Assembly: GCA_048013815.1 (NCBI GenBank)
Contig: CM106586.1
Coordinates: 1,178,001 to 1,242,000, forward strand
DNA from: Setoptus koraiensis
Lineage: Eukaryota > Animalia > Arthropoda
DNA: 64,000 bases
Direction of reading: 5' to 3'
The notes beneath the pieces are model-generated. The model saw nothing but the letters and a program-made list of their open reading frames with translations, was not told where the DNA came from and searched no databases. Both the position numbers and the translations under genes were made by a program. Below are positions 1 through 20,093 of this stretch, piece after piece; positions within the stretch are counted from its first letter, which is position 1, and every line of letters starts with the position of its first letter.

Positions 1-618
1 TAATTAAGCGCCCAGTTCGGCCAAAGATCAATGCCATATATAATCAATGTGGCGTCTTGCGACAACCTGTTTGTTTGTTGTTACTTAACGTCGTCTGAAC
101 GTTGTGACTGCTACTGATAATTGTGTGTGATAGTCATTAGGTCAGTTGGTGAGCCAGGCAATGAGTTAGCCAACGAACAAAATGGATAGCTATCCACAAT
201 GAATAGGCGATTGTGGGCGCCAATTTGTGTATAGCTGTTATTTATTCTGTCTATTTAATCTGTGCCCATGTGTATATTTTATCTTTGGTTGGATCTATCT
301 CGGCCAGCAGCCTGTACGACGGCTACATATGAGAGTGTGTGTGTGTGTGGCTTGTGGAAGAGGAAATGATCAACATTTATCATTTGTGTTTATCTTATTT
401 ATTAATAAACGAGGCCGGCCCGCATGACCCCGTGCCCTGGTGCCCTGGTGTCTGTGTGCGCCTCCAGTGTTTCGATACCCCGGCACCCTTATGGCCCGCT
501 TAGCGCCTTATGGTGGCTAGTAAATGAGCCAGTGTCTTGAGCCAACTTACTTCGAATTTCGAGCAGATAAGAATCAGTTGGCGCAATAAGACACTGAGAC
601 ACCGAGAGGAAGAGGGCG

Positions 619-639
619 ACACACACACACACACACACA
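619..639. repeat. (AC)n microsatellite
   Basis: Perfect AC dinucleotide run seen directly. Confidence 0.9.
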
Positions 640-1197
640 GGGAGAGAGAGCAAAAAAAGAATTGGAGCGTGCACAAATAAATCAAGCTTACTATTCTTTT
701 TATGAGCGTCTATGTGGGCACTAGACACATGGCGACTTGCTATGTGCGATGTTTTTATCCCTGCAACTCATCCCGTTACAGCTGATACGCGTGTCTGTGT
801 GCAAGCGACTGGCCTAGGCAAGAAATGGGGACCGAGGGCCACTTGAGTGAGTGGCTTGTCGGGCTCAACACATATACTGACTGACTGGCAATGTGAATTG
901 AATGGAGCAAGTTCATTGTGGTGGTTGATGTTGTTGTTTGTTGATTTTGATGGTGTTTGCGCAACTCGCTCCAACTGGCGTCTAATTCTGTCCATGTCCA
1001 ATCGATGAAATGACACTGAATGCGCGTAACATTGATAACATAACATTCATAGCACGACACAAGCCTCACTGGTCAGTCAGCTAGCTCGCCAGAATAAAGA
1101 GGCGCTGTTGTTGCCAACAGCGACACATTAAGTAGTATGGTGTAATAATGAATAGCACAGGTAGACAGGCGAATTGTTTGGTGCTCAATTGTTGCAG

Positions 1198-1302
1198 TTG
1201 CTGTTGTTGTTGTCGTTGTTGCTGTTGCTGTTGTTGCCGACGTCGCCGCTGGTGCTGATGTTCATGTAAATAGGTACAACAACAACAACAACAACAGCAA
1301 CA
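1198..1302. repeat. Imperfect (TTG/CAA)n trinucleotide low-complexity tract
   Basis: Runs of gttgttgctg followed by caacaacaa. A similar tract lies at 1980-2052. These explain the spurious poly-Q, poly-C and poly-V ORFs in the track. Confidence 0.8.
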
Positions 1303-4300
1303 ACCTATCTGTCTCGCTATTATCAATGCTTTATACAAACACAGTGACACAGAATAGAAATATCACGTATTTGTTTATGAGAAGTGCACTTGCTGGTGGC
1401 AAAAAGAGCGGCCAACGCGAGCAAGCGAGTTCAGTTCAAAAGATAGACGATAGAGGGAGAGTGGCGAAAACAAACAACAAATGAATTATATCAATAATTG
1501 CTCTCACTCGAGCCAGTGTTATTGCTATTGTTATGTGAGGGCACATAACGGCGGCCACTCGACGCCACCTTCGGAGCGTCGGCCATCAATGAGATGTAAG
1601 GAGCGTGCAGATTGAAGTGAGAGAAGTGCATAGTTTTATCTGTTTATCTCTCTATCGCCTCAGACAGGATAGGTCATCAGTGGCGGACAACAATAACCGG
1701 CCGACAACAATGTTTTTACTTCCTTCCAGCGGTGTCGCCCCGCGCCTTGTCCAGATAAAGAGATAAAACAATGAACAAAGACTCATCTCTATGTAATCTC
1801 TCTCTCTATGTGTGTCAGCTCTCTATCACCTTTGCCTATAACTCTGCTGCGAGGTGTCGACAAGCACCTAACAGGCACCTAAACTACCCTAGGGCTTACA
1901 GTGCTTGCTCATGTAATAATAACAACAATTGAGTGAGAGAAAGGGCAATTATTGATATAATTCATTTGTTGTTTGTTTTTGGCTCTCGCTGTCGTTGCTG
2001 TTGCAATTGTTGTCGTTGTTGCTGTTGTTGTTGCCGTTGTTGCCGTTGTTGCAATTGGCCAATCGCTTTATCACTTGGGCTCTCAATTGGCGCTGCTTGG
2101 GCGCCCCGTTGACGAATACGTGATGTTTCTGTTGGTTTGTGTTTGTGTAAAGTTGTGATGGCGGCCAACAGAAACAAAGAGTGTGCAGAAGAGGAAGTGG
2201 GCGCACAGTTGGCATTTGCCTAGTTATCTGTTGTTTGTGTTTATGTGAAATGAAAGATCGCTGACCCAATGCCAACACGTTGAAAGCAGCAACACAACAC
2301 AGAAGAAACTAACTTGGCCAACCTCATCCTTTCAAAATCTATTGCGTCATATATTTATAAATGTGTGTGTTAACTGACTATCGCGCGAAAGAAAATAGAG
2401 AACGTGGCAGTGAATTATTTATTACATAATAGATGAATGCCAATGCCAATTCTGTTGATGGTAATGATGTTAATGATGTTAATGTTATTGCTGATGGCGC
2501 GCACCCACACACAATCAATGGTATATGAGAGGTTGTTGTCGTTGTTTTTGTCAACAATGCTACCGACGACGACGACGACGATCACTCGTTTTTGGCCATT
2601 GTTGATCTATCTCTCGCTCGCTGTCCCGTGGCATCTCATTGGCAAACGCGCCACGCAAATGCCATTCGCCCTTATGTTGGCCCATACATAATTTCAAGAT
2701 TGTTGTTGTTAGAGTTACGTCTTGGCATCGCAGCCTCGGCATGGCCGATCGGTAGATTGGTCGTGCACTAGCAAAACCGTACGCACGTATGTGCGATTGT
2801 TGGTCATTATTTTGCCCGAGACACATTGTCTAGTTGAACAAAAATCACAAAATCACGTGCATTTGTTACGTGGTTGTTTGTTCGTCTCCATCCATCTGCT
2901 ACCTTCTTGTTGCTCTCTTTTTTTCTCTCTCAACTAAGGCTACACCTAAATAGAATTAAACTTGGCTTTGTGTCCGACAACAACGACAACCACTAATGAG
3001 TCAACTGTGTGCTGACACCAACTGCTGTCCAAAAGTCGACACAAAAGTCACAATAAGACAGCAAAGCTACATTCGCCATTGTCTATCTGCCACGGGCTGC
3101 ATCTCACACGCTCCTGAAACTCGTAAACACGTGCACACCGCAGGGTGTCGACTAGATTAAATTTAAAATTAACTAATAACAGCAGATGGTGCAAACATCA
3201 GGGCTCACAATTTGTGACACACTCACTACAGTAACAACAACAATAACAACAACAGCAACTTCCCAACAAACAGGTTGTGTCAGCACACTAGTCAATCACT
3301 GCAAACGACATCATTTAAGCGGCACACTGGCTGCCAAGCTGGCACGCATACTCCCGGAAATAGTCTCAAGTTGCGGCAAGCTCAACGACAACAACAATTT
3401 CCTCGCTGCAGTTCAGTTGTTAAAAATTTCTCGCTGCTCTCAATAACAACGCAAACAATCAGCTCAAACTATCGAAATACACGTTTCATTCGTGACATTT
3501 GGCTCAACTTTTCTTTTGCTCTTCCTGTCTTTCGCAGACACTCTTTGCCAAAGCAACTTTCAACGGCCAGTTTGTAGCCAGTCTCGCCAGTTGGGGCGCA
3601 CACACGCTGCAAACAGTGCCAACACAACGGCCCTATAATCACTAATTACCGACGGGATACTTCATACGAGGCCACGGCACCAACGGCAATCCATGTAACT
3701 GCCACGCAAACCGTGCCGCTATTTCTGTGCCAATTCTTGCATTTCACGCATCGCCACTGACCGTCCCCACGTGGGCCCCATGAATACTCAACCAGCACAG
3801 AGAATGTGAGATAGTGTGCACTCTAGAGAGCGCCTCTAGTGAAAGGCCACAAGGGTTTGTCCGTCGGGTCCGTTCGCCCAACACACCCGACGTCCGCTCC
3901 AGGTTTCTGTACCCCTTCCGCACTCACTTCCGGTGCCTCTCCCTTCTATTTATTAGGCAACGCGAACCTGACGGCCGAAAGATTACTTGCTCGGGGCGAG
4001 GGGCAGAGATAAGGTGTCCCTGTGACCTATCATAAGCCGTGTAAAAGTGGTCCCACTTTCAACATGGCATCTCCAATATCTTTCTCATCTGATAAGAGGG
4101 CCAGCAAATTCCCGAGGGCACTCATCACAAAAAAAATGACGCACGTGGAGTAGCTGGCGCATGCCTCACAATACACGAGCAATTGGGATGGTGGTTGTGT
4201 CTGTGGCTCGCAGTGATGATGGCAGTTGTAGTTGCGGTATTAGAGGCAAATATCATTACAGTAGAAGAGGTTGACCTTCTCAACAGTGAGACGGCGCCCT

Positions 4301-7300
4301 CCCCCCCTCGGGTATTTCGGGTATTTATACATGACCCTGCGGGATCAAGATCCCAAATCCTTTACCCCGATATCCTGAGTGAGGTACCAATTGCAGAACA
4401 AGCTAAAGGATCTAGGTCGAGGCCCGCTTACTATTTAATGATGCTAATGATACAAAAACGTCCGACATGAATGCGAAAGTTACGCTCGCTGATTGTGTCA
4501 TCCTATGAGTCGTGAGTTATGACTACTGCACCACCAAATGTGTAGACCGTCAATGTAAGGCCGCGAAATAGCATGAGAGCGAGAAATATAACTTCCAATT
4601 AATTCGAAAGAGAGTTTCGCGAGACAGATATAAACAGAAGAGAGCCGGTTACAATAATTATAGAATGCCAGCAACAATGAAAGCGAAGTTAGTTAACCAA
4701 TTTAGGATGAAGAAATGCGCCAGAAGTCCTTTATGATCGGCACTTGGTCCTATCAACTCGATAGGACATCGATTTATTGGGTTGAAAAATGTACGTGTAG
4801 TCGAGTACAGAGATGAACTCACCTGAAAGGGTGAATTTCCGACTTACTTCGTTAGTAGACGATACCAGTTTAAATTAGTAGTTGATAGCAATTAAATTAG
4901 TGATAAGACGCGTTTCGGCGAGTCGTACACTTGATCACCTGTCGATGTTGCTAGCTTCGTTAAATTTGCTTCTAAGATTATGGACGGACAAGCGACAACC
5001 AAATACTGCTCAGCTCTCTGATAAATATCCGATCAAACATATGCCTCCTTGGGGACCGTCAGAAATCGACATTCAATCAATGGACAGACTCCCGAACCTC
5101 TCCAATCGACGACCACCTCATAAACCTGCTGTTTTTTGGGGGTTTTTCTCTTATGGTGGTGCAAACGTTCTCATTCGTCGTGTTTCTTTTCTTTTCGTGT
5201 TTCTCCGGGTGCCCCATGATTCTGCTGAATCAAGACGCATATCATTTAAAAATGGCACATTTCGTGTTGAGCGTTAGTAATGTATTACATGTAACGCGTT
5301 CCAGGCTACAACTTCTAGCTAGGCATTTTGTGTATGAAGGGGTCTTTAATTCTGACAAAAATACAGCAACAGACACAAAATGTGTGGCAGAAAAGGATCT
5401 GTGCATTCCGTGCGTTTACTGTAAAAGGTTTACATCAGGCAATAAACTTGCTGTCAGCTAGTCACTGGGAGTTGGATTTTTCCACCACAGCTGCCGTACT
5501 GCAGTTGCTCTTGCATGAGAATGAGGAAGTAAAGGATGAAAACTGATTGGGAGCCCTGGCCAGAATCAACTCAAATGAGCTGGTCTTTGGGCAAACCGTT
5601 GCTTTTCATCACGATCTCGGCACAAGCTTCGCCTTTGCGAGAGGCCCAAGGAAAACAATGTTCTGCGATAGATGTAAAAATTAGGCTCTTATTTGTATTC
5701 GATGCGCACACTTTGGGTTCGCTCGTGTGTGTCTTGGGTGCCATTTCCGCGTACATGTTTGACCGCCCGCCAGCATCAAGTAATTATTGTATCGGACAAA
5801 ATATATCTACACAACACACACAGCACAGTGCACAAATTGAAGTGGTTGGCAAGTTGCAGCTAGCACTCCATTGTGTTGCGTCAAATGTGCCCCGGGGCCA
5901 ATAAATTCAGCTCATCACGTGGCCATAGGTTATTTATCGGTCAGTTAAATTCTCTCGATTAGCTGCAAATGTGTGTCGATGATTTTTCCAGGTGCTCATC
6001 ACCTTATTTGTGCTGGCCTCATCAGTAAACCTCACCAGAAAAATACTTTGTGTTGGAAAACTGTCTATGCCGATTGTTCCAATGCTGTGTCCAGCCAAGT
6101 AATAACGGTTCGTGGCACAAACTCACCCACCTGCTTCAATACTATTCTTGGGGCCTCAACACCACACGATCTCTGAAAAGTGCATGGCTATTGGACAGAT
6201 TCGGCGATGCAATTTAGGCTTCGTAGAGCCTCTGCAATTGCGCCAACGGGCGGCTAACCAATGAGTCGATTGTTGTAAGAGCAACAACGGCAATTGGCCA
6301 TGTGGGACCAATGACAAGAATAGCAACAACAAAAACAATGATCCTAAATATAGCAGCATGTTGTGAATGGGCCAAACATATTACAATATTCATGCAAAGA
6401 GTCTTCCATTACCTTCAGTGTGTAACATGCATATTGAAGTTAATTAATATTCATTTCCCTCTCACTGTTTATGCATATATGTACTTGTGTTTGTAACCAC
6501 TCATTAATCTAAGTAAGCGAGCTGACTTTTGCCTTTCTCCCTGCCTCCTTATCCAATCCATTGCCATGCTTAGTTCTTTGTTTATTGCAAAGGCTACAAT
6601 TTCATGCGTCATGTATGATGGATATATTCATATTATTGTAGCGTACAAGTCCCAACGGGTATATAAATAGCAAAAGCACTTTGTGCTGGCGTTTTTCATG
6701 CAAATTCATGACAATCCCATCGGCACCACTTACACACATGGCTGTTGCGATATCTATATTCATACTGGCTCACAAGTGAAATCTTGTGGCACACAAGCGT
6801 AATTTTTGCTTGCCCCCAGTAACTTTCCAATTATATATGGCAATGGGAATGTTGTTGGCTCCCGAAAACTAGCTGCAACAAACACATCAAGATTGGTATC
6901 ACAATACTGTCGTCGCTATCATTTGACCTTCGGCCATCAATAATCCAGTTATCAGTTGATCTGAGATGACGATCTTGATCTAATCTAAATTGTTCAAGTC
7001 TGTGTAAATTATCCGGAACCTAGGATTCAGTCAATCTCAGCAAGAGACCCGCTTGATCTGTTGGTTTCCACTTTTGATGTATCTTTCAGGCGAGATCCGA
7101 CTCTATTCATTTGTGTGCGAAGGTGTCAGAATATCGGGAGAAAGAACTTAGTTTCATTCGTCTCTATCAGACTGTTAGGCTAGGAGCCTTCTTTCTAGAA
7201 GAAAGTTTCAACTTTTAGTCTAGGAAATCGAATAAAATAAAAATAGGAAAGACAGAAATAGAAGAAACCGGAAAACTGAAATACTGAAATTGAAAAAGAA

Positions 7301-9554
7301 GGAAAGGGGTCCATTCTTTAGAAAAAGTATGCTGGCAGGTTTATTCGAAAACGAAACAAGTCTGGAGAGCACAAAAATATCTGAGCTCGACGATTGTGTC
7401 ACCCGTTCGGATCATAAACTGGGGCCTTAGTCGGCTGACTCCTAAGACTGTTTTGGAATTTTTTCGCCAGTACAGTTCGTATGGCCTTGAGAGACGTGCC
7501 GAAATAAAGTTTTTCTACCAGCCGTTTCGATAAACACTGTTACAGTTAGCAAGATCGCTCGAGTAGATATGCTTACATTACATTGGTGCGCTGGTCTAAG
7601 ATAAAGACGAGATTATCAACTTTGTATCAATTTAGTTTTGGTTCGGTGGAGCAAGGCAAGATGGCCAACAAGAGATAGATAATAAATGATAGAATATAGA
7701 TCGTGGAGTTTTGTTTGTTTGTTTGCGCAATCTTTTGGACTATCAACATTCGAGTGAGACATCGAGAGATAAGGGCCAGATACCGTGTATGTTAGATATC
7801 GTGTTGGCAAGATTCAACGACTGGGACCCAGTGCACTCAGTCCAAAGTTTAGCGAATATCAGAATTTAGTAGCGTGAATGTCTTGATGGAACTCCATCAC
7901 GCCACCTATGAATATCTTACCGGCTTGGAGTGGTTAGTTTAAGGTAGGACGCGGGGCTATAATGGGAAAATTGAGAGAAACTGAAACTCTCTGTTTTCAT
8001 TTATTTAGCATTAAGCAGCAATAAGGTGCCTATAACATTTAGCATGCGATCGCACCAATATCTAGATAGATTGCCCATGTAAATAAATCATTAGATCCAT
8101 GTATGAGCGCTTCTCAGTATCTCATCACTATGACATCATTATCATTTAATGGTTCACAGCAAGTGAGGTCCATTTATCTATTTATTCGCTGCACCCGATC
8201 GAATCAGACCAAGCAAGGCTGGCACTGTTCGTCTGGCAAACTACCGATCCCGTCGAATGTTCAGAATTTTCGCAAAGTAATCCGCAACAATCTAGATTAA
8301 TGTTAACTAGCCACAAATATCATCCTCATATTGAGGTTGTTTTCTGCAGATCTTTGTTGTTTGTTTAGAGCAAATATAAGCTAAGCCTCCAGCGCAAGAT
8401 CATGTTATACGATGCTCTAGAGATCTAGAGCGTTTTTTTTTTCGAAAAAAGATGTATGCACCACGATCATTGTCCATAGTGATTGGATAATTATCCGTTC
8501 GGCTCAAATTTTTCTCTGTCTATAGTGATTTGTCCCGGTGTCTACTAACTGTTCTATGACAATTCTTGCGGTTCTATTTGCTGTCTAACAGTTCAAACGA
8601 CTGTGTTGTCTTATTCAGTGAAGATGCCGATTCAGTTAACCAGACCGAGTATTTTTTTTTTCAACCGAAATCAAAAGACCCGCTGGCTATCGGCTACAAT
8701 TTACGGTTTCGGTTATCAAATAGATGTCATTGATTCTAAGAGACCGCATTGAATATGGCATCACAGTTAGAAACGGGTGAAGCTCAATCAAGCTACTTAT
8801 ATTCCGAAGCTCATCTATTTGTGGGGCAGACTCTACAATAGAAACTGTTTCAGCTAGCTTTTCGTTAGCTACGACAGAACATCTGATAACTCTTGGCTAT
8901 CTTAGAAACTATTGGAATCTCAGCAACCTAAGAAACATAACCGTTAAAATACTGGCGACTTTCAAGCACAACCAAACCTAATTCAACACTGCTAATGGTT
9001 AATCGAACGGTGAGCCTTTTCGCTTCGGTTCTGCCATCTCTATTATGTAGAGAGAAACCTAATTCGAGACAATATCCAAGATAGTATTCTCAGGCGTGAC
9101 TAAAAAAGAGCAGATTGATAATTGTTTTCAACAGTAACAGTAACAAATGGCAATGCCGAAACTCGTGGCATCAGTTATTCTGACCAGTCAGTGAACCGAC
9201 TTCCGTGTCTGTTGTCAGCTGAAGCACCGACAATCTGGAAAAGGGATGAAAGAAACTGTTTGGGGCCGGTTTTGCACCGGTCGCAATAACAGCCAGCAAC
9301 TGTTTTGAGAGTATCAAATATAGCACGACATTCTATTAGAGACAAGCATGCACCATTTGCCAGTCGGCTGGCCAGCAATTACAAGAGGCATGGCAGGGGA
9401 GAGAGTTGAAAATCGACTAGCGTTGCTAGATTAGCGGGAACCCTCCAATATAAAGCTGACTTATTGAGCCCGAACAAAAGTCATTTGCTCCTCTGTAGTT
9501 TTTATGCAATTTAAGTGCTGTACCTAAGTGGGGCGATTGCTTTTCTCTCCGTGT

Positions 9555-9557
<3 letters not shown>

Positions 9558-9606
<49 letters not shown>
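9558..9606. repeat. (GA)n microsatellite
   Basis: Perfect GA run of 49 bp. Confidence 0.95.
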
Positions 9607-9608
<2 letters not shown>

Positions 9609-12105
9609 TTGCGTTGTCTGTTGCAGCTAGGAGAAAAGTCATCAGTTTCTAGCGATGCCCCATGAGCTTGGCGGCGCTTGATAGCGCGCCAACTGTGACA
9701 TAGAGACAGCGCATAGATCTAGATGGACAGTGGGCCGTTGTGGATGTTGTGGTATGTAGTTGGTGCGCTTATTTGTTGTTGTTGACTAGCCAGAACCAGA
9801 GCCAAAGTGAAAGCGAAAGTCATGATTTGCAAGGCAGAATAGCATAGTCGAAGAAGCAAAAAAGTAATTTTGTCCAGCTAAGTCGAGCTATAGTGCTACA
9901 ACATAGTAGTGCCATAACAGCAACATCAACAACAACCAACAACATTCACAAATAATAATAATAATAATAATAAGCACGGAGTGGCTACGCAGAGGTCTGG
10001 CTAAAATCTAATTTTGTCAACGCGTTTACGGCTGACCTTGCCAGAAAATGCGACATCACACAAACTAAAATCAAAGCTCATTTCGCCACTACCACCACCA
10101 ATATCACAGTGCCTGTTATTGCTGCCACTGGCCACTTGATATGCTAACTTATTACGTGAGGCCTATCTATCTTTGACACAATTCGCGCTCGATGTTTGCC
10201 AGCTTCGCTTGCTTAACAGTTAGAGAGCGAGAGTTGTGGGCGTATATTGTCACCTCAGTTAGAATTTGCGGGCCGATAGGATAGACATTTCCTGTTGGTT
10301 GATCAATCTGATACGGTGCAAAGTGCATGACAATTTCGTTGTCATTTTGTATCAATTTATTTCATTTCGTCTGGGAGCCCGATACAGCGAAAACGAACGC
10401 GACAAGCAAAGAAGTTGGTGCGAGCCGTATCGCATGGCAGTGCGATGCTTCCTTCTTCTTTATAAGTTGTGCCACTGGCACTGAAATGAAAATCCCATGA
10501 ATCATCCAAATTAAACTGTCACAAGATCCAACAAGACCCAGGTAATGCCACTCGGCCTCTTGGATCTGGGCCACAGATTCTGGGCTCTTCTCGCCACCAA
10601 GCCCACATTTCCTACTGGCTATGGCGCCACCAAGTAACGAGGCCGAAATATGGCGAGAATGAGGCCGAGAATAGTTTCACGCCCCGAAACCTTTCTCAGG
10701 CAAGCCGAAGAAGAGGTTGCCAAACGATTGCGTGGCTTAAATTGTTTTTATCCGCGCTATTTCGTGCATGACTTTCTACTTTTCTAGATCGAGCTCCTAG
10801 GGAAAGGCGCCAAAGCTCGGCTAGTTGCTCGACGATACTTGCTAATATTTTGTCATCCATCTTTTATTGTTTATTTGGTCTCTAAACGAACGAGGTGGCC
10901 CCGGTTTGTGTGCACACCCTGCACTTTTTCTTCTCAGTTCGAGCCCTCCACTCAGCCGATAGAGGCCTTATCGATTCATTGGTCAGTTGTGTCATGTGTT
11001 AGCCATGGTGACCATAATGTGACGAGTTAATATATCATTTCTGTTGTTGTTCTCAATTGGCCTCTGAACGATGAAAACAACTCGCCAATCACCGTCCTCT
11101 CTATCGTGCGTTATCTCCTCGCCGCATCCATCTATCTCATCTTCTATAAATCAAATCCCATCCGATCAAATCTGATCTGTTTTCGCCCGGCTCATGGCAA
11201 GGCATCGTTCGAATTTCATTGCAGCCGATTGCAACGTGTCGTTACGGATCGGATGGAGCCAGTGCTTAGACAACTAGACAACTTTACTAGGCTTGCCGGC
11301 CAAGTAAACATTGTCCGACGTCTCTGTGTTTGATTCGATCAGCGCTGGTTGTTGTCTGCAGGCCAGCAAGTCGCCTAGTTTAGATACATATCTACCCATC
11401 ACGACAGAGGGAGAGAGAGCCAGCTAGCCAGCATCAGTGAACTTCACAAAATTGCCACTTCACAGCCAATGGCGATCCATCAAATAGATGGCTCTTTGGG
11501 CTGGCCTCGATAATCTCGACTCAATACTCACATACATTTCGATGCTAGACCCGCATTGATTTATACAGGGTCAGGGTCCCATTTCTGATGATTTAGAGAC
11601 GGCCACTATTTGTTGTATTGTGATCATTACTATGATAAGTTCGCTCTTCTAATCTCGCCACTCCGATGTTGGTGCTGTCGTCGTTGACCAGTGGCGGTAA
11701 TAAATGAGCAGATTGAAGGAGAAGAGGAAACAATTCCATAGACAATCGTTATTATTTTCTTCATGCTGACATCACCTAACGCCACAGTGCTGGTATATGG
11801 ATAAATGCGGCTTGCTAGATATAGGCCAATGTCAATCAATTCTTGTAACTCGCTCAGTAACTGGTATCACAGCTATTCTGGCCTTTTATTGCCGGAGACA
11901 TCATTCTTCATATGAGCAGGCTTAAGTGTTTAGATTATGCTTTCTATCAATATATCTGTATTAATGCAGCTATTGCGTTGGATCAATTGTGCGTGGGTGT
12001 GCTGAACTTGAACAATGCTCGTAATATCTAATTTGAATATCTCCGTTTGTGTACTATTATGGCTAATCAACAATCTATAATCATCTTTACCCATCACACC
12101 AACAG

Positions 12106-14290
12106 GTTCAGCTAGAATTGCATCATTAGAGGCGCAACAACACAAAATGAATGGAGCAAACAATGGAAATTTGTTAATTAGTTCCGACCAACTAACACAC
12201 ACTAACTACAACAACAATCACACCTCTTCGTTTATCTATAGATTTGACATAAGTGAAACAAGATTTGATTCAAATGAGCGCCTGTTAGAGGCAGAGTTGC
12301 ACCTGTATAAATTGTTACCTTTGCAATTGTTACATAATAATAACAACAAAATTATCAATAATAATAATGGTGATCGCAATAGTGGACAAATGGTCGATTT
12401 CAACAAATCTGCGACCAGTGTCCATGATGATAAACGATATGAAAAGTCCCATTGGTATCCTCATTGGTATCCAACAAGCGATTTCTTAATCTATGATGCT
12501 AGTTCTGGTCAAGTGAGAGATAGTCAAGCGGCAACTCAGGCAACTGGAAGAAGTCCAACGACAACACGTTCAACGGCAGAGACAACGGCGATAACAGTCA
12601 CCAGTAGCAGACAATGTAATCTCAAGACCAACCTACTTGAAGTAAGTGTATCCAATATGGTACCGTTAAGGCAACCTTTCCTTCCAATAGTTTGTCTCAC
12701 AATATTTGCTAACACACATCCTTGCCCTTTTATTACAGGTGAGTTTATATCAGATATTGTCTGATCCTGATGGTGATAGTGATTTTAAACCAAACGATTT
12801 ACGCCTCTTAGATCTTAGAAGAATCGATCTAGAGTCTGTTGGCTGGGAAGTGTTCTATGTCAAGCAAGCTGTGATTGATTGGATGGTCAAAGGACATAAG
12901 AACAAAGGTGATTATTGCACTAGAATTGTCTTGCTGATGCTATTACTATTGTTATAGTGCTAATCTTAATCCTTCATCTATTCTATCTTTTCTATTGACA
13001 ACTTTAGGCTTCTTACTGAAAGCTAGATCCATGCTTAATGAGAGACTAGAAGCCGGTTGCCTTAGATTCTCCGCCTTAATTGATACAACTCACTATATAA
13101 AACAATCGGATCATTTGAACACATCGACATCATCATCAACAAGGGATCACAAAAGTAATCCATTTCAGCCTATTCTAGTTATCTATACTGATGATGGAAT
13201 TGAAAAGAGTCCATTGTCGCAGCCAATCAAAGAGGCCTTAGGTGAGCTATTTTCTCTAATCGACTATCATATCACTTGTTTCATCAATATATCAATTAAT
13301 TAATCAAAGTAATTTTATATCAACACATGCCGTTTATCTACAACAGATAATAATATCTATGGCTATAGGTCCACTGATCCACCTGAGGGACCAACAAAAG
13401 TCAGTGAGTTGACATCGGATCAGCAACTTACAATAGATGACATCACCATTAATGACGCCATGCTCTCTAATGGCAAGACCGGAAGTGGCAATAATGTGAT
13501 AAGCTACAATACTAGTAATTTTAACAACAAGATGATTATCGGTTCGGCCAACAACAGCAAAAATGAGCAAAAGTGCCTGAAAATGCCAATCTTGCTAAAT
13601 GTCAGCAACATCATGCATAATCAAGCAATCATGCCTCACAGTAAGTAGCTTAGTTTAATCAAGAAACCATTCCTCCTTAATGTCGCTAAACTCGAACAAT
13701 TTAATCAATATAACAAACTGTTGTTTATCTTGCACCTGTTTCATGATATCGAAACAGAAATAGATCTCAATCAATGCACCATCAGGCAAAGATCATCCGG
13801 GGACCGCAAGCCAGAGAGTCTAGTGAATCTGGCATCAGGAAATCAGTCAATATTGTTAAATCAATCAACAACTATTCATGCAAAATTGATACGTCAACTA
13901 GTGAAATTGGAGCAACTTACCAGAAAGTTCTGTCAACAAATTTCGTACCTCGCTGAGAAACAAAAGCAATCGAATCAAATGAGAATAGATTACAACAAGA
14001 ACGATCCATCTGGCAGTGAGAAGCTTAAATTGATAGAGGAGTTATTTGCTGTGAGTTCATGCAATTATGGAACCAATAGACAAGTACCAGTAGATTCTTC
14101 ATTTTTTGAATTGCTTGCCACTCAAAATGCTGGTGATTCTATCCTGTCGCCATGTAGTATAAATTGTACAGATATCACTACTAAGTCATCAATGAAATTG
14201 TCACCGATAAATCTATTGTATCATAGTGCTGACCACCAGGTGGTATTACGTCAGCTCAATGACGTGGTGACAGTTGGGTGCCGTCCCCTC

Positions 14291-14293
<3 letters not shown>
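12106..14293 (+). CDS. admp: ADMP-like (anti-dorsalizing morphogenetic protein) TGF-beta superfamily protein, 5' exon(s) not located, mature domain degenerate
   Basis: Five frame-compatible exons with GT..AG introns: 12106-12641, 12739-12907, 13008-13241, 13347-13640, 13758-14293 (588 codons plus stop). Prodomain motifs are ADMP-type: FIYRFDIS..ERLLEAELHLYKL, EVSLYQIL, LRLLDLRRI..SVGWEVFYVKQAVIDW, LRFS...RDHKSNPFQPILVIYTDDG. The C-terminus SPINLLY..VVLRQLNDVV matches ADMP FSINLLY..VVLKQYDDMV. The first exon found begins in phase 1, so the signal-peptide exon lies upstream. Confidence 0.8.

Positions 14294-14326
<33 letters not shown>
14292..14326. repeat. (AG)n microsatellite beginning inside the ADMP-like stop codon
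   Basis: ctc TAG agagag... seen directly. Confidence 0.9.
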
Positions 14327-14329
<3 letters not shown>

Positions 14330-14454
14330 CGCATTACACACAATTGCACTGTAAACTAACTGTAATCTATGAGAATAAATAATTGTATTATAAACTGATT
14401 GATGTCATCCCATCGCAGAATTCTGCAACAATGCGTTTCGACTAAACTCAATCA

Positions 14455-15627
14455 TTATTTTGCTGCCGCTTTCAGTCTCTTCAATACCTTGGACCAATAT
14501 TCAGGAGTAGTTTTCACTTCTCTGGTTTCTATTCTGAGCCTATCCTCTGGACTGGCATTGGCCAAGTATTTTTTCATGGCTTCAATATAGTCGACTACGC
14601 TCTCTAAATGGCGTCTGTCATATTCTTTTCTCTCGTCAGGTTTTAAATCACGCCACTGCGAAACAGCTACTTCGAGTTTGTTTTTTGGATTTGTAATTTG
14701 GCTATGGTCTAAAGCTGCCATTGTTTCAGCACAGAATACTAGATATGATGATCTTGCCGGTGGTAATGGTCTACCGAACATCCTATGTTCGTATTTCAAG
14801 TTGTCTTTCTCTGATATAGTTTGCTTCGATCGTTTTAGAGTAACATCTGGGTAGGCCGCTGTATATTCTGCGAGCTCTCGTTCATAACGTTCTTGTTCCT
14901 CTTTGGCTTTTCGAATCCAACGAAATTTTTTCTTGTCTGGCAAGAGAAGATAATCACGTCTTAGCAACTTTCTCGTGTTTTCATCCTTGGTTTCGATTTT
15001 ACTGATTTTACTGGCAACATAGAGTTGCACAGCTGAGTGTGGAGATTTAGGAGGTGGTGGACGGGCTGCTTTTAATTGTCTCTTTCTCTTTTTTACTTTT
15101 TGTAGTCCCTCTGCCGTAGGAGTATTTTCTATAAAGTGATCCAATTGCTTCTGATAAGCCTTCATATCTTCTTCATATTGATCTATGTATTTTTGTTTCT
15201 TATTCTCGGGCAAATTCTCGTATTTTTCCCTATACTTCTCTTTAGCTTGTCTAAGATCATCCTTGTTTGCATAAGTTTTTGAGCCAATTTTATGTTCAAT
15301 AAATCGTACTAAAGCTGTCTTTGGTTTTCTCGGTGGCGCAAATACTTTTTTGAGCATTGAATCAGAACTGGTTTTTAACTCGGCGACGACCTCGTTCAAT
15401 TTTCTAAATTTTCTTGCCCTTGAGATTAACTTTTCGCCTAGAAGTTGGCAATCTGAATTCGAATAGGGACCAAATTTTATTGCGTCCCAGTCGATTATTT
15501 TCAATATCTTTGTATAAGGTCTATCTATTGATGCGTCAGGGTGATTCTCAATCCTGTCGAGGAGTGTCCCGACGTCACCATTAGTCCATTTGGCAGGAAT
15601 GTCATTTGTCTTGGTGTTGTTTTCCAT
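14455..15627 (-). CDS. UBTF: Upstream binding factor / nucleolar transcription factor 1 (multi-HMG-box), 390 aa, intronless
   Basis: UBF N-terminal dimerisation domain (KWTNGDVGTLLDRI..IDWDAIKFGPYSNSDC..RKFRKLNEVV), then three HMG-box-like repeats (PPRKPKTALVRF, PKSPHSAVQLY, PLPPARSSYLVF). First ATG is at 15627; the ORF track starts at a TTG. Confidence 0.85.
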   Translation of the reverse strand: MENNTKTNDIPAKWTNGDVGTLLDRIENHPDASIDRPYTKILKIIDWDAIKFGPYSNSDCQLLGEKLISRARKFRKLNEVVAELKTSSDSMLKKVFAPPRKPKTALVRFIEHKIGSKTYANKDDLRQAKEKYREKYENLPENKKQKYIDQYEEDMKAYQKQLDHFIENTPTAEGLQKVKKRKRQLKAARPPPPKSPHSAVQLYVASKISKIETKDENTRKLLRRDYLLLPDKKKFRWIRKAKEEQERYERELAEYTAAYPDVTLKRSKQTISEKDNLKYEHRMFGRPLPPARSSYLVFCAETMAALDHSQITNPKNKLEVAVSQWRDLKPDERKEYDRRHLESVVDYIEAMKKYLANASPEDRLRIETREVKTTPEYWSKVLKRLKAAAK

Positions 15628-17083
15628 CGTCAATAAATTGGTCTGATATAATAATGATATTGATAATAATTAAGTGCAAATTAATATAATTAAAGAGTTA
15701 AAATTAAAATAAATTAAACATGGCTCTCAACAGGCTGTCTATGCAGTTCTGGTCAGCTGCAAGTACCATGCATGCAATAATTTTTGAGCATCTCTAATTC
15801 AAGCATCGATGGGAGAATAAACGTTGAATTTAGTGCCATGTCATTAAAGAGCTGTGCTTGTGGAATCTCTAAACTCCCATCAACGGTATTTTCTGTTCAC
15901 AGACAAACAAAATTGCTTCTTACTGCTTGATATAAAAGAAGCGCGTTAACAGGGCGCGAAATTCAATGTGGAAATCATTCAGAATGATTCATTCTCAACC
16001 GCGCTTCCCCGTCCCCACATGCCAATCTAATGATATTGAATTCTGTATTCGCAAGTATTCGCTGATTCAATTTGAACGATCCTCTCGGAGTAGTCCCATC
16101 CACGATGGTTGCCTCGAAGAGGTGTAGACAAAATTCTAGCTAAACCTTCAATCATTGATTAGCTGATGATGATGTAGTTTGGGCTAGAGCGAGGGGACTG
16201 TATTTACTTGTTAATTACTTTCATAACCCTACAATACGCCTGGTTGCTTTGGCGATACTGAGTGCCACACTGAGGAATCTCAGTTTCGACAGTTCGAGAG
16301 TAGGAAAAGTCCACAAGAAAGAGCCTTGGCTTCAGGAAGGAAAAGTAATCGACTTGGTCAACAAATGTTTATTCGGCGGAAGAAGAAATCGACATTCATC
16401 CGGATTGGAGAGGCTAGATACATCGATACATCTATCTCCCTATGTAAAGCATGGGAAAGGTCTTTGATCGATCGCATCGAGAAATCGCGCCGCCTAAACT
16501 TGATATACACCCAGTGACATTCATGTAATTTTACGAAATGAATAGTGAATGGTGATTAAATCGTTAAACTTATCTCGTGTTACCACTGTCCCATTTTTAT
16601 GCGATACTTAACACAGCTAACATATGTTACATTGATTGCTGCTATAAAATGTCATGCCGAGCACAAAGTGTTTGAATTATAAAGATGCATCTAGAGACAA
16701 TCTTTTGAAAGGTGAGCCTGCGTTTGAAAGATTATTGCTTCCATAAATGACAAAGAATTGATGATCAAATATCGAAAACTGTGACTCTTAACGCTCATTC
16801 TCAAGATGACATTTTCAGCTCTGAAAATGTACATCTATTTCTTATCTGTGCTTTGATCGAACGGTAGTCTTTCCATGCTCGAACGTGCAATCTCGATGAA
16901 CTTGAGATTGACAGTTGCAACATTCGTGCCGACTGTCATGTTTGGCTATCGTTATCGGGATATTTTGTGATAACTTTCATTTCGCAACCCATTACATTAT
17001 TCCAATAAAAGTTATCAAATTTCAATCAAACACGCCTGCGCACTTAGTCTCATCAACAAAGGAAACCATTGCTCTTAGCTAAT

Positions 17084-17141
17084 ATGCTCTGGCTCTGACG
17101 ATTGTTCGATGCTCTGGCTCTGACAATTGTTCGATGCTCTG
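17084..17141. repeat. 25-bp tandem repeat, ~2.3 copies
   Basis: atgctctggctctgac(g/a)attgttcg twice, plus atgctctg. Confidence 0.9.
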
Positions 17142-17321
17142 CCGTCGATAGTTTCTTTTGGAACATTTGTAATCATTTTAGTCTTCTTTAGAATAATAGA
17201 GAGTACAAGGTTTTTTGAAAATCATTATCATTTCAACAGAAGCAATAACATCGCGTCTATTGTCCACATTGTCGAAAATTGATCGAGTCGAAAACGGAAA
17301 AAAACAAATATTCAAACCAAA

Positions 17322-17869
17322 ATGTCCAACGGTAAATAATAAACTTCGTTATATCTCTTAAGATTATCCACATTTAATAACTTCTCAGTAAAGTCAAGTA
17401 TTTATCACGTTATTGTATTTCTTCGAATCTCCAGAATACGTCAACCCAAATTATCTACCTCCGCCTTATGACGGGGGTACCCCTCTGGGAGGAATGCAGA
17501 ATCAAACGACAAACAAACTCGATGAGCCACGAAACTATCCATTTTATGTGCCTCAAATGCCGCAAGTTCAACATACGCAAATAACGCCATACATGCAGCC
17601 TATTCCAAACAATGGCTCCACACATGTCGCAGTAACCACCGATATCAGAAAAGGGGCTCAATGTTGCTGCTGCTGTTGCACTTGTCCATGTTGGGTTTGT
17701 ATGACAATTATATTGGTAAGTTGGCGAAAAGTATTCCAATCATCAGCTTATACTACATGAACTGGGTTATTTGTAAACTAATTTTTCTTTCTTAACGTCC
17801 GTCCTGTATCAGGTACCAATGTTGATTTTTCTTTTAGTGGCTATTGGAGCCAACATTATATCCCGATGA
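17322..17869 (+). CDS. Small Pro/Gln-rich PPPY-motif protein with poly-Cys and C-terminal TM helix (CYSTM-like), 115 aa
   Basis: Exons 17322-17331, 17435-17715, 17813-17869 with canonical GT/AG introns in matching phases. Product: MSNEYVNPNYLPPPY...KGAQCCCCCCTCPCWVCMTIILVPMLIFLLVAIGANIISR. Confidence 0.7.
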
Positions 17870-18584
17870 AATATGATACAGTTGAAAAAATGAGGAAGAT
17901 ATGGAAATGAAAGATTTTGATACATCGAGCGAAGCCGACCTATTCCATTCCGACTTTCTATCAACAGTTGTCTTGTCATTCAAATCAACGTTGTGCTGGC
18001 CATCACCTGACACCTTCATAATCAAGCGACCAGATCTTCTTCCCAGTGAAGATCGCTATATCACATGCTACTGTAAAACCACATTAAACCTTATAACTCG
18101 TTCGTTGCTTGTATGATCCAATGCAACAACTGATAACCTATTTCAAATCAAACTGAATTTCGTATATCTTTTTCAGATGCATCATGTTAATGGTCTGAAG
18201 TTTTCTTTCAATCAATGAAATACGACGCGACGGATAGTTCAAACAATGTAACAACTAGCTTTATTTCATTTCGCGATATATTGTCGGAAATCAACCAGAT
18301 CAACCATTTTCTAAGTCATTTCGATAACGACCATTGCAAATGACTTGAAATTGTTCCAAAAATGACGAGCGTCCATTTTGGCCTTCTGCAAACTATCATC
18401 ACCAAATTCTATTATTCGTATCAATTTCTAAAATTTTTGAGTAGCCTTAGATTCATCATCACTGACCTTCTGCAGTGATTTTGCTGGATAAGATGAACGA
18501 TACAACAATAATTAATAACGATGAAAATTTGAAATTCGTATATATCATAATAGATATTAAAAAGGAATATGAGGTGTGTGAGCA

Positions 18585-20093
18585 CTAGCGCTCTCGATAC
18601 TGATTTTTTTTGCGACTTAACAATTTACCTAACAAAAGATTTCCCAAATCGAGCAGAGCTTCGGGAGTTTGCGAAACGTATCTACTAAACGAATATTTAG
18701 TATTGTCGACAACACTGGCGGCATCCTTGAGAGTGGGCAAAGACTTCCTTTGGTTTGTGAAATATGGCATTCTCAGTCGCTCAAAGGGATCGTCCAACAA
18801 ATTAGCCATGCGGTATCTATCTCTGAACTCCGGTTCTTGCAACACCTCTAACGTTCTCTCGGGGTGGTTAGTGATGATAGCATCAATTCCGAACCTGTAC
18901 GAACAAGAATCGGACACAAATGTGTAAATTGGCGTAATTAATGAATATGCAAAGTTGATCGTTGTTAGCTGAATAATGTATGATATTTTTCATGACATAA
19001 ACTTTGTCTGATGATAAGACGAAAGACTTACCCCAGCACCTTTCTCATGTGTACAATAAGATCCACCGTCCAAAAGTAGATCTTCTTAAAGAATTGGCCC
19101 TGGTCTCTGGCGAGTGCGGCCTCTTTAAGTCTGCCGAAATCTCGCAAGAAACTGCCACAATTTGTTATTCCATCTCCTTGCCAGATGTTAGTTGTTACAT
19201 TATTGAATTGGCGCCACATACCTAATATGTCTCCAACAGGATCGTTCATGCTAACATCAAAGCCAACGTTTCGTTGTAGATTTACCATATTGTTTGTATT
19301 GACATGTTCCAAGAAACTGCCAATGAGATATTTATCTTGGACATGATTGACGCACAGAATTATTTTGACAAATCTTGGCCCATTTCCGTATATGTATTTA
19401 TCTATTAGTTTGGCTAGATGAATACCCGCTGCCGTTTTACTTTGTTCACTCAAATTACTCAATTTTAAATCAAGCATGATCAACGTCAGATCATTTGGAT
19501 ACGAATGATGGACACCTGATGATATAATAGTGACACAAGATAATGGAAGGACGAACAATCAGTTTCAGCTAACTTTACTAGAAAGTGAATTTAAGTAACC
19601 AGAAAAAGTGTTAGTTGCGTTTCTATATACTTGTGTCAGTGATTGTGGCCAAATATTTGAGATATTTCACGAAACTTTCCTGATAGGTGCAATGTCTGGT
19701 GCAATCGCAGGGTAGTCCGTGAAAAACTTCTTTTGGATAGCCATCTTTGTCGAAGACTACGTCAATTTCTAGAGCATTAGCACCTGCCCTAAATAGTAAA
19801 AGGACAATCAAATATTAACCATTATCATCTGTTGTGAGTTAATGCGCATTAATGCTATTGATTTGACAGTTAAAGTTGACTCACTTAAGTGATTCATGGA
19901 TTTCTTTGAATGAGTTTGCCATGTGAGCTATATTCCAGAATGGTATTCGATCATCTTTAGCTGCAACAATTGCTCCTCCAATTGTAGCTGTTGCAGTGTA
20001 ATTATCATAATAGTTTTGTCCAATAACAGTTCCAACGCAAAAAACAAATCCTATCCATATCGGAATCCAAAGCGTCCACATTAATGAAACCAT
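18585..20093 (-). CDS. Secreted sphingomyelinase D / SicTox-like (dermonecrotic-toxin-like) phospholipase D, 386 aa
   Basis: Exons 20093-19885, 19788-19631, 19515-19032, 18894-18585 with compatible phases. Signal peptide; DDRIPFWNIAHMANS (catalytic His); GANALEIDVVF (E-x-D Mg site); FHGLPCDCTRHC (second His plus class II cysteines); IMLDLKL; IWQGDGITNC; YFWTVD; GIDAIITNHP; plug motif RMANLLDDPF. Confidence 0.93.

Follow-up and report, generated by a model that had tools for sequence, protein, structure and literature searches.

The Setoptus koraiensis window (the whole stretch of DNA that was analyzed, 64 kb in length) carries on its + strand a chain of five exons separated by four introns of 97 to 117 bases, all of them GT..AG (Table 1). 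Counted from the acceptor at 12106, the chain comprises 588 codons in frame, as the initial annotation of this DNA had it, and the frame is already open from 12081; at the base composition of the gene, the computed chance of 597 stop-free codons is ~1e-17. The amino-acid strings quoted in that annotation are indeed encoded at 13574-13640 and 13758-14293. By scanning for ATG codons, hydrophobic stretches, and donors, we also obtained a candidate 5' exon, whose phase-1 donors (11996/11997 or 12020/12021) are compatible with the acceptor at 12106; another candidate ATG lies at 12015. For this exon, we detected neither RNA support nor conservation with L001, the probable ortholog in a second species. 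The conserved blocks of exon 2 are common to S. koraiensis, L001, and a more distant relative, L004. Its Asn-rich stretch is absent from L001 and L004, and this motif is common in the S. koraiensis genome, because many unrelated contigs of runs X2, X4, and X7 map to 12330-12374 with loose ends.

Table 1. Features of the BMP-like gene of S. koraiensis and its surroundings (window coordinates)
Feature	Position	Strand	Content
Candidate 5' exon	11912..12020	+	ATG 11912; moderately hydrophobic N-terminus
Exon 2	12106..12641	+	Acceptor cag/G at 12106, donor GAA/gtaagt at 12641; from 5' to 3', variable N-terminus, conserved FIYRFDIS..LLEAELHLYKLLP (prodomain arm, first strand), Asn-rich low-complexity insert, conserved C.LKTNLLE end
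Asn-rich stretch	12330..12374		Low complexity, AAT/AAC repeats, in exon 2
Exon 3	12739..12907	+	Prodomain arm with LRLLDLRRIDLESVGWEVFYVKQAVIDW; Pfam TGFb_propeptide match
Exon 4	13008..13241	+	Remaining prodomain arm (SMLNERL..GCLRFS, QPILVIYTDDGI); 58% identity to L001
Exon 5	13347..13640	+	Conserved NIYGYRS.DPPEGP block, then variable linker without RXXR
A4 run	13569..13572	+	A5 in run X4 (insertion behind 13568, depth 9)
Exon 6	13758..14293	+	Last exon; stop TAG 14291-14293
Finger-2 remnant	14195..14290	+	KLSPINLLYH..QVVLRQLNDVVTVGCRPL; C6 at 14279-14281, Pro at C7 position 14285-14287
(GA)n microsatellite	14293..14326		~17 units, begins at last base of stop codon
HMG-box ORF	14455..15633	-	Single exon, 392 aa; three HMG-box matches (PF00505, E 1e-11)

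Exon 5 ends with a cysteine (13574-13576), which had been taken as C1 of a ligand domain, followed by a conserved MPI...IMP block, and a phase-1 intron (13641-13757) leads to the last exon. The N-terminal part of the last exon holds the cysteine taken as C2 (13775-13777; absent from L001) and then a conserved, helix-like KLIRQL..E.L..KFC segment (Cys 13931-13933). Its later part is made up of a variable stretch with Cys 14060-14062, the wrist-helix-like ELLATQNAGDSIL, a CxxxC motif (14153-14155 and 14165-14167), and finger 2. The Logan contigs of X2 and X4 break at the microsatellite that follows. The HMG-box ORF lies tail-to-tail with the BMP-like gene, 160 bases from its stop; downstream of L001, RPN2 is found instead, and L004 is accompanied by neither of these genes. 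Synteny was thus uninformative. Positions 1-12000 contain no ORF of at least 150 aa on either strand, and the rest of the window is compact and intron-poor; Rfam gave no match in 1-12000 or in the larger interval 1-20000. This upstream stretch of ~12 kb may have a regulatory function, or genes with small exons may lie in it.

Public runs that contain the locus are mostly DNA, because the introns are present in them too. RNA-like support consists of two contigs, each at a depth of ~3. The first, a 265-base contig of run X7 that is identical to the window, covers exon 5 over 13345-13568 and joins 13241 exactly to 13347 (GT..AG), which indicates that intron 4 (13242-13346) is spliced; the second, a 230-base contig of run X8, lies within the last exon. 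As to the proposed check of the exon chain by RNA, it was thus positive for one junction and for part of the last exon, and the other junctions, for which there is no RNA contig, rest on conservation.

Run X4, which is labelled as the same organism but is another sample, carries five A residues in place of the A4 run of exon 5. This A5 allele is computed to shift the frame and to bring up a stop codon at 13618, immediately ahead of the C-terminal domain, and would remove everything from the presumed C1 onward. The window sequence itself is not in error at this site, since run X2 (depth 132) agrees with it and the frame conserved in L001 is the frame of the window. The X4 allele may truly truncate the protein in that sample, or the contig that carries it, of depth 9, may be misassembled. 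Frame-disrupting alleles in relatives had been proposed as a sign against a functional gene; the one that we found comes from another sample of the same organism, and it is outweighed by the deep conservation in L001. The other differences of X4 inside the gene are all intronic (+T behind 12681 and G>A at 13723), and in the neighboring gene X4 shows T>C at 14461.

The descent of the gene is indicated by two of its parts. Exon 3 matches the Pfam TGFb_propeptide family (PF00688) with an E value of 3.9e-6 and 27.1 bits (cut-off 25.8), and the equivalent exon 3 scores 23.4 bits in L001 and 30.5 bits in L004. The ligand end of the protein is harder to recognize. No Pfam match to TGF_beta (PF00019) was obtained with the whole last exon; with the last 61-79 residues, the score reached 13.8-14.2 bits against a cut-off of 27 (E 0.08), over profile positions 73-102 of 104 only. 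As a single sequence, the last exon matched nothing in Pfam, in the PDB (phmmer), or in the ESM Atlas, and its protein language model recognition score fell within the range of shuffled proteins. More was seen with a two-sequence profile built from S. koraiensis and L001, which retrieved 14 PDB chains, all of them BMP2, GDF5, or BMP2 chimeras (E 0.02-0.5); every one of these alignments placed the last 60 residues onto the wrist helix, finger 2, and C6. Consistently, local alignment of the last 60 residues to BMP2 scored above all 5000 shuffles (z 8-9; 8.1 for finger 2), and finger 2 aligned to that of L004 with a shuffle z of 6.1. Profiles of exon 3 and exon 5 searched against the PDB returned noise only.

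As judged from these comparisons, the gene is a TGF-beta/BMP derivative, and finger 2 is the sole statistically BMP-like part of its ligand domain. The PF00688 match in exon 3, the BMP-like finger 2, and the X7 junction bear out the earlier description of a TGF-beta/BMP-family gene with intact prodomain and splicing. The label "ADMP-like", which the initial annotation had added, lacks specific support: the sole family signal is a generic BMP2/GDF5/BMP6 one, obtained in a reference set (the PDB) that contains no ADMP. AlphaFold2 modeled the last exon at pLDDT 37 and the 107-aa L001 domain at pLDDT 44; the low-confidence model displays a hairpin-helix-hairpin secondary structure, and Foldseek found no match for it in the PDB at E ≤ 0.001. 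At such pLDDT values, we count these models as evidence for secondary structure at most.

An exhaustive phmmer search with the last exon (1.84 billion representatives) returned one true relative, P0001; the other four matches were repeat proteins and were dismissed on inspection. P0001 is encoded on Logan contig L001 (SRR33593474), which contains the whole gene, with an open frame and four introns at positions and phases identical to those of S. koraiensis. Profiles of exons 4 and 6 searched against a 5.8-billion database retrieved pieces of L001 only and no closer ortholog. Between S. koraiensis and L001, synonymous differences are saturated (pS 0.75-0.9), and dN/dS by NG86 is undefined because pS ≥ 0.75. 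We consequently compared the regions by amino acid identity and dN. The prodomain core and finger 2 are 66% and 68% identical, respectively, with a dN of 0.26 in both, and exon 3 is 66% identical; the exon-5 block that had been read as finger 1 is 43% identical (dN 0.34), the inserted middle of the last exon 24% (dN 0.80), and the linker 20% (dN 0.87). From this regional dN pattern, the prodomain is conserved better than the ligand domain as a whole, which is the reverse of canonical ligands.

Unconstrained sequence at saturated synonymous divergence would be expected to lose both similarity and frame, which argues against a pseudogene. At the level of sequence, the comparison shows purifying selection on the prodomain arm and finger 2, and it shows that the knot-less state, with its four introns and open frame, has been retained in a second species whose synonymous divergence is saturated; the selection argument draws on one ortholog, L001. 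The earlier proposal that the gene is maintained and not in random decay holds up well here, given the intron positions, the open frame, and the blocks conserved over this distance.

The phylogenetic setting was assessed with ABHD16A, another gene of the window, which is 54% identical to its counterpart in Aceria tosichella (Eriophyoidea) and 42-43% identical to those of Tetranychus, Dinothrombium, and Leptotrombidium; about 35 Logan proteins cluster with it at 52-56% identity. By the same gene, SRR33593474 holds at least two closer relatives of S. koraiensis, at 86% identity (dS ~0.9) and 75% identity (dS saturated), represented by loci L002 and L003, and L001 probably belongs to the more distant of the two. 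L002 is syntenic with the window at 33-53 kb (ubiquitin-S27, S8e, trypsin, PBP, metallo-beta-lactamase fold, and ABHD16A). The non-synonymous rate of the BMP-derived gene is two to four times that of ABHD16A (dN 0.07-0.15).

By scanning metagenomes with exon 3, we found a more distant relative, L004 (contig ODIC01000950.1, 442-1812; GC 32.5%); the equivalent scan with exon 4 gave no match. L004 has three prodomain introns at positions in common with S. koraiensis, and its exon 3 is 51% identical. Its ligand domain is canonical in most respects: it is encoded in a single exon, matches Pfam TGF_beta with an E value of 2.3e-22, has BMP6, BMP2, GDF5, and BMP7 as best PDB matches, and keeps C1, C2xGxC3, C5, C6xC7, and a GWxxW-type motif (GWSNWMMYP). 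At C4 it has Ser, and the 299 residues recovered include no RXXR. L004 is the closest natural relative that we found; it resembles the S. koraiensis gene in the three prodomain introns, in the S-K-x-x-L-x-C context of C5, and in the lack of an interchain Cys and of RXXR, and differs from it in its intact knot, its compact one-exon mature domain, and the absence of low-complexity inserts. By these sequence features, L004 resembles a naturally occurring step from canonical BMPs toward the knot-less gene.

Far more has been lost in S. koraiensis, whose 597-residue protein contains no RXXR, no GWxxW, no CxGxC, and no CC. No furin-type RXXR is present at the homologous position of L001 either, and the wrist/finger-1 motif of the GWxDWI[IV]AP type, which serves type I receptor binding, is absent from both the S. 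koraiensis protein and L001; the earlier observation that this tryptophan motif has been erased is thus correct. Of the six-Cys knot C1..C2xGxC3..C5..C6xC7, C5 and C6 are present, CxGxC is gone, and C7 is Pro in both species. Both proteins end in GCRPL-stop, whereas canonical ligands end in CxCx-stop; because the S. koraiensis protein terminates three residues past C6, as canonical ligands do, Pro can be taken to have replaced C7.

For the remaining cysteines, we used L004, with its canonical knot, as an alignment bridge. The context of C5 reads S-K-A-S-L-S-C in L004, S-P-C-S-I-N-C in S. koraiensis, and S-K-C-H-L-I-C in L001, and from this S-K-x-x-L-x-C alignment, the second Cys of CxxxC (14165-14167) is C5. 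The position of the interchain Cys (C4), as aligned to the CC of BMP6, is occupied by Asn in S. koraiensis, Ile in L001, and Ser in L004. By this alignment, the whole lineage lacks C4, and the first Cys of CxxxC was newly acquired. The initial annotation had aligned C4 and read C5 as Ser, an assignment that has to be reversed: of the CC pair, C5 has been retained and C4 is absent, being Ser already in L004.

The N-terminal half of the ligand domain can be read in two ways. In Model A, which follows the earlier assignment, C1 is the cysteine at 13574-13576 and C2 the one at 13775-13777, with a canonical spacing of 27-28 residues; its costs are that "C2" is Ser in L001 and that 75-100 extra residues would be inserted ahead of C5. 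In Model B, the conserved K[FL]C supplies C1 (13931-13933), the Cys at 14060-14062 serves as C2 or C3, and the whole domain resides in the last exon. From K[FL]C to the end, this domain would measure 105 residues in L001, 120 in S. koraiensis, and 103 in L004, and hhalign and MAFFT on the ligand region favor Model B. Finger 1 of either model, compared with BMP6, Nodal/BMP2, and L004, was indistinguishable from shuffles (z ≤ 1.3). Thus, of the claim that C1 and C2 align, the canonical spacing stands and the similarity does not, since the segment does no better than shuffles and "C2" is not conserved in L001. Likewise, the claimed loss of a C3-C7 pair is correct as far as C7 and CxGxC are concerned, but the full pairing map behind it has at least one equally defensible competitor and is wrong for C4 and C5. 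"Loss of C3-C7" is a reasonable reading, though not the sole one; the robust point of the cysteine map, as read from the sequences, is that the ring-forming CxGxC/CxC motif pair is gone. Six C-terminal cysteines are kept in both species (13574, 13931, 14153, 14165, 14279, and one in each species' variable stretch), with CxxxC and K[FL]CxQ conserved in both.

Taken together, we favor, at a probability of roughly 0.6, the view that this eriophyoid-like mite has a genuine and expressed gene whose ancestor encoded a BMP-type TGF-beta ligand and which now serves another purpose. Its product is probably a re-purposed protein and not the relic of a dead gene, and the comparisons show that finger 2, with C5 and C6 only, is the recognizable remainder of the ligand domain. 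Its history may have involved two steps: dimer cross-linking and furin maturation would have been lost first, and the receptor-binding half of the ligand domain would then have been relaxed and remodeled. In pro-complexes of the TGF-beta family, the arm domain and the finger-2 hairpin form a joint sheet. The product of the S. koraiensis gene would be an uncleaved, single-chain pro-protein in which these two parts are still packed together; being the two conserved parts, they probably constitute the functional unit. Such a protein would not be released as a mature dimeric ligand, would make no use of the canonical receptor epitopes, and would leave type I/II receptors inactive. If it is secreted, its most likely place in the BMP pathway would be that of a binding partner or modulator and not that of a morphogen; a modulating or binding role in BMP signaling is the most economical guess. 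The more specific roles proposed in the initial annotation, a prodomain-based antagonist, a decoy, or a modifier of dorsoventral patterning, are hypothetical.

Of the alternatives, the one that survives best, which we nevertheless regard as unlikely, is that the protein is still a signaling ligand, in which a rewired six-Cys disulfide set takes the place of the knot and the receptor surfaces have diverged, possibly within an uncleaved precursor. The six cysteines conserved in both species would fit such a ligand, as would the length of the Model B domain (105 aa in L001 versus 103 in canonical L004) and the low-confidence hairpin-helix-hairpin of AlphaFold2. However, both tryptophans and the entire finger-1/wrist half are unrecognizable (z ≤ 1.3), there is neither a furin site nor an interchain Cys, and the models combine pLDDT values of 37-44 with the lack of a Foldseek match.

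A less probable explanation, to which we give little weight, is that selection has been relaxed and the gene is heading to loss, so that the ligand domain is decaying within an intact frame that is merely left over. Several observations point in this direction, namely, the X4 frameshift allele immediately upstream of the domain, the Pfam TGF_beta score below threshold, the low language-model recognition score of the last exon, the fast evolution relative to ABHD16A, and the low RNA depth. Against it speak the open frame, the identical introns, a finger 2 with 68% identity at saturated dS, the GCRPL-stop end common to both species, and the negligible chance of so long an open frame without selection. 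Finally, a gene-model artefact, in which the real mRNA would end in a different 3' exon that encodes a canonical seven-Cys domain, is very improbable: RNA coverage is limited to a single junction and a portion of the last exon, which leaves room for such an exon, but when the six frames of the 64-kb window were searched for this alternative, no CxGxC..CC or CC..CxCx-stop was found, no frame of L001 contains CxGxC, the next gene begins 160 bases downstream on the other strand, and the modeled last exon is conserved up to its stop codon in L001.

The re-purposed gene can be placed among known TGF-beta family members. With canonical BMP ligands (BMP2/4-Dpp, BMP5-8-Gbb, and GDF5, the group to which ADMP belongs), it has in common the PF00688 arm, a finger 2 that is alignable to C6, and an end three residues past C6; it differs from them in having no CxGxC, C7, CC, GWxxW, or RXXR, in its unrecognizable finger-1/wrist half, and in a prodomain that is conserved more than the ligand domain. 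GDF9, BMP15, GDF3, and Lefty1/2 lack the interchain Cys (C4) and form no covalent dimer; all of them retain the six cysteines of the knot, and their prodomains are cleaved off. They thus resemble the S. koraiensis gene in the absence of C4 and differ from it in having kept the knot and the cleavage, and Lefty, a non-signaling antagonist, offers a functional analogy. Cleavage-site mutants of BMP precursors are engineered dominant negatives with an intact knot that act via disulfide-linked heterodimers. The uncleavable pro-protein is what they have in common with the S. koraiensis gene, which suggests a possible mode of action via partners, whereas the S. koraiensis protein has no interchain Cys.

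The finding is real and unusual, and it is a variant of a known family. To our knowledge, all TGF-beta/BMP ligands are considered to share the cystine knot as an invariant core, and among the top-ranked titles and abstracts of the literature, we found no description of knot-less TGF-beta ligands or of eriophyoid BMP genes. A broader possibility, which we put forward tentatively, is that eriophyoid-type mites keep a small family of BMP-derived, knot-less, uncleaved pro-proteins, with the arm and finger-2 hairpin as the functional unit, that tune BMP signaling by binding ligands, receptors, or matrix. If true, this would be the first natural TGF-beta-family lineage kept by selection after losing the element that defines the family fold. 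A long-preserved member without knot, tryptophans, dimer Cys, and furin site would imply that the precursor scaffold of arm and finger 2 can have a function of its own. Moreover, canonical ligands, L004 (no C4, no RXXR), and the knot-less genes of S. koraiensis and L001 would form a natural stepwise series that may serve as a model for the conversion of a morphogen gene, and that bears on how BMP signaling is organized in extremely reduced mites.
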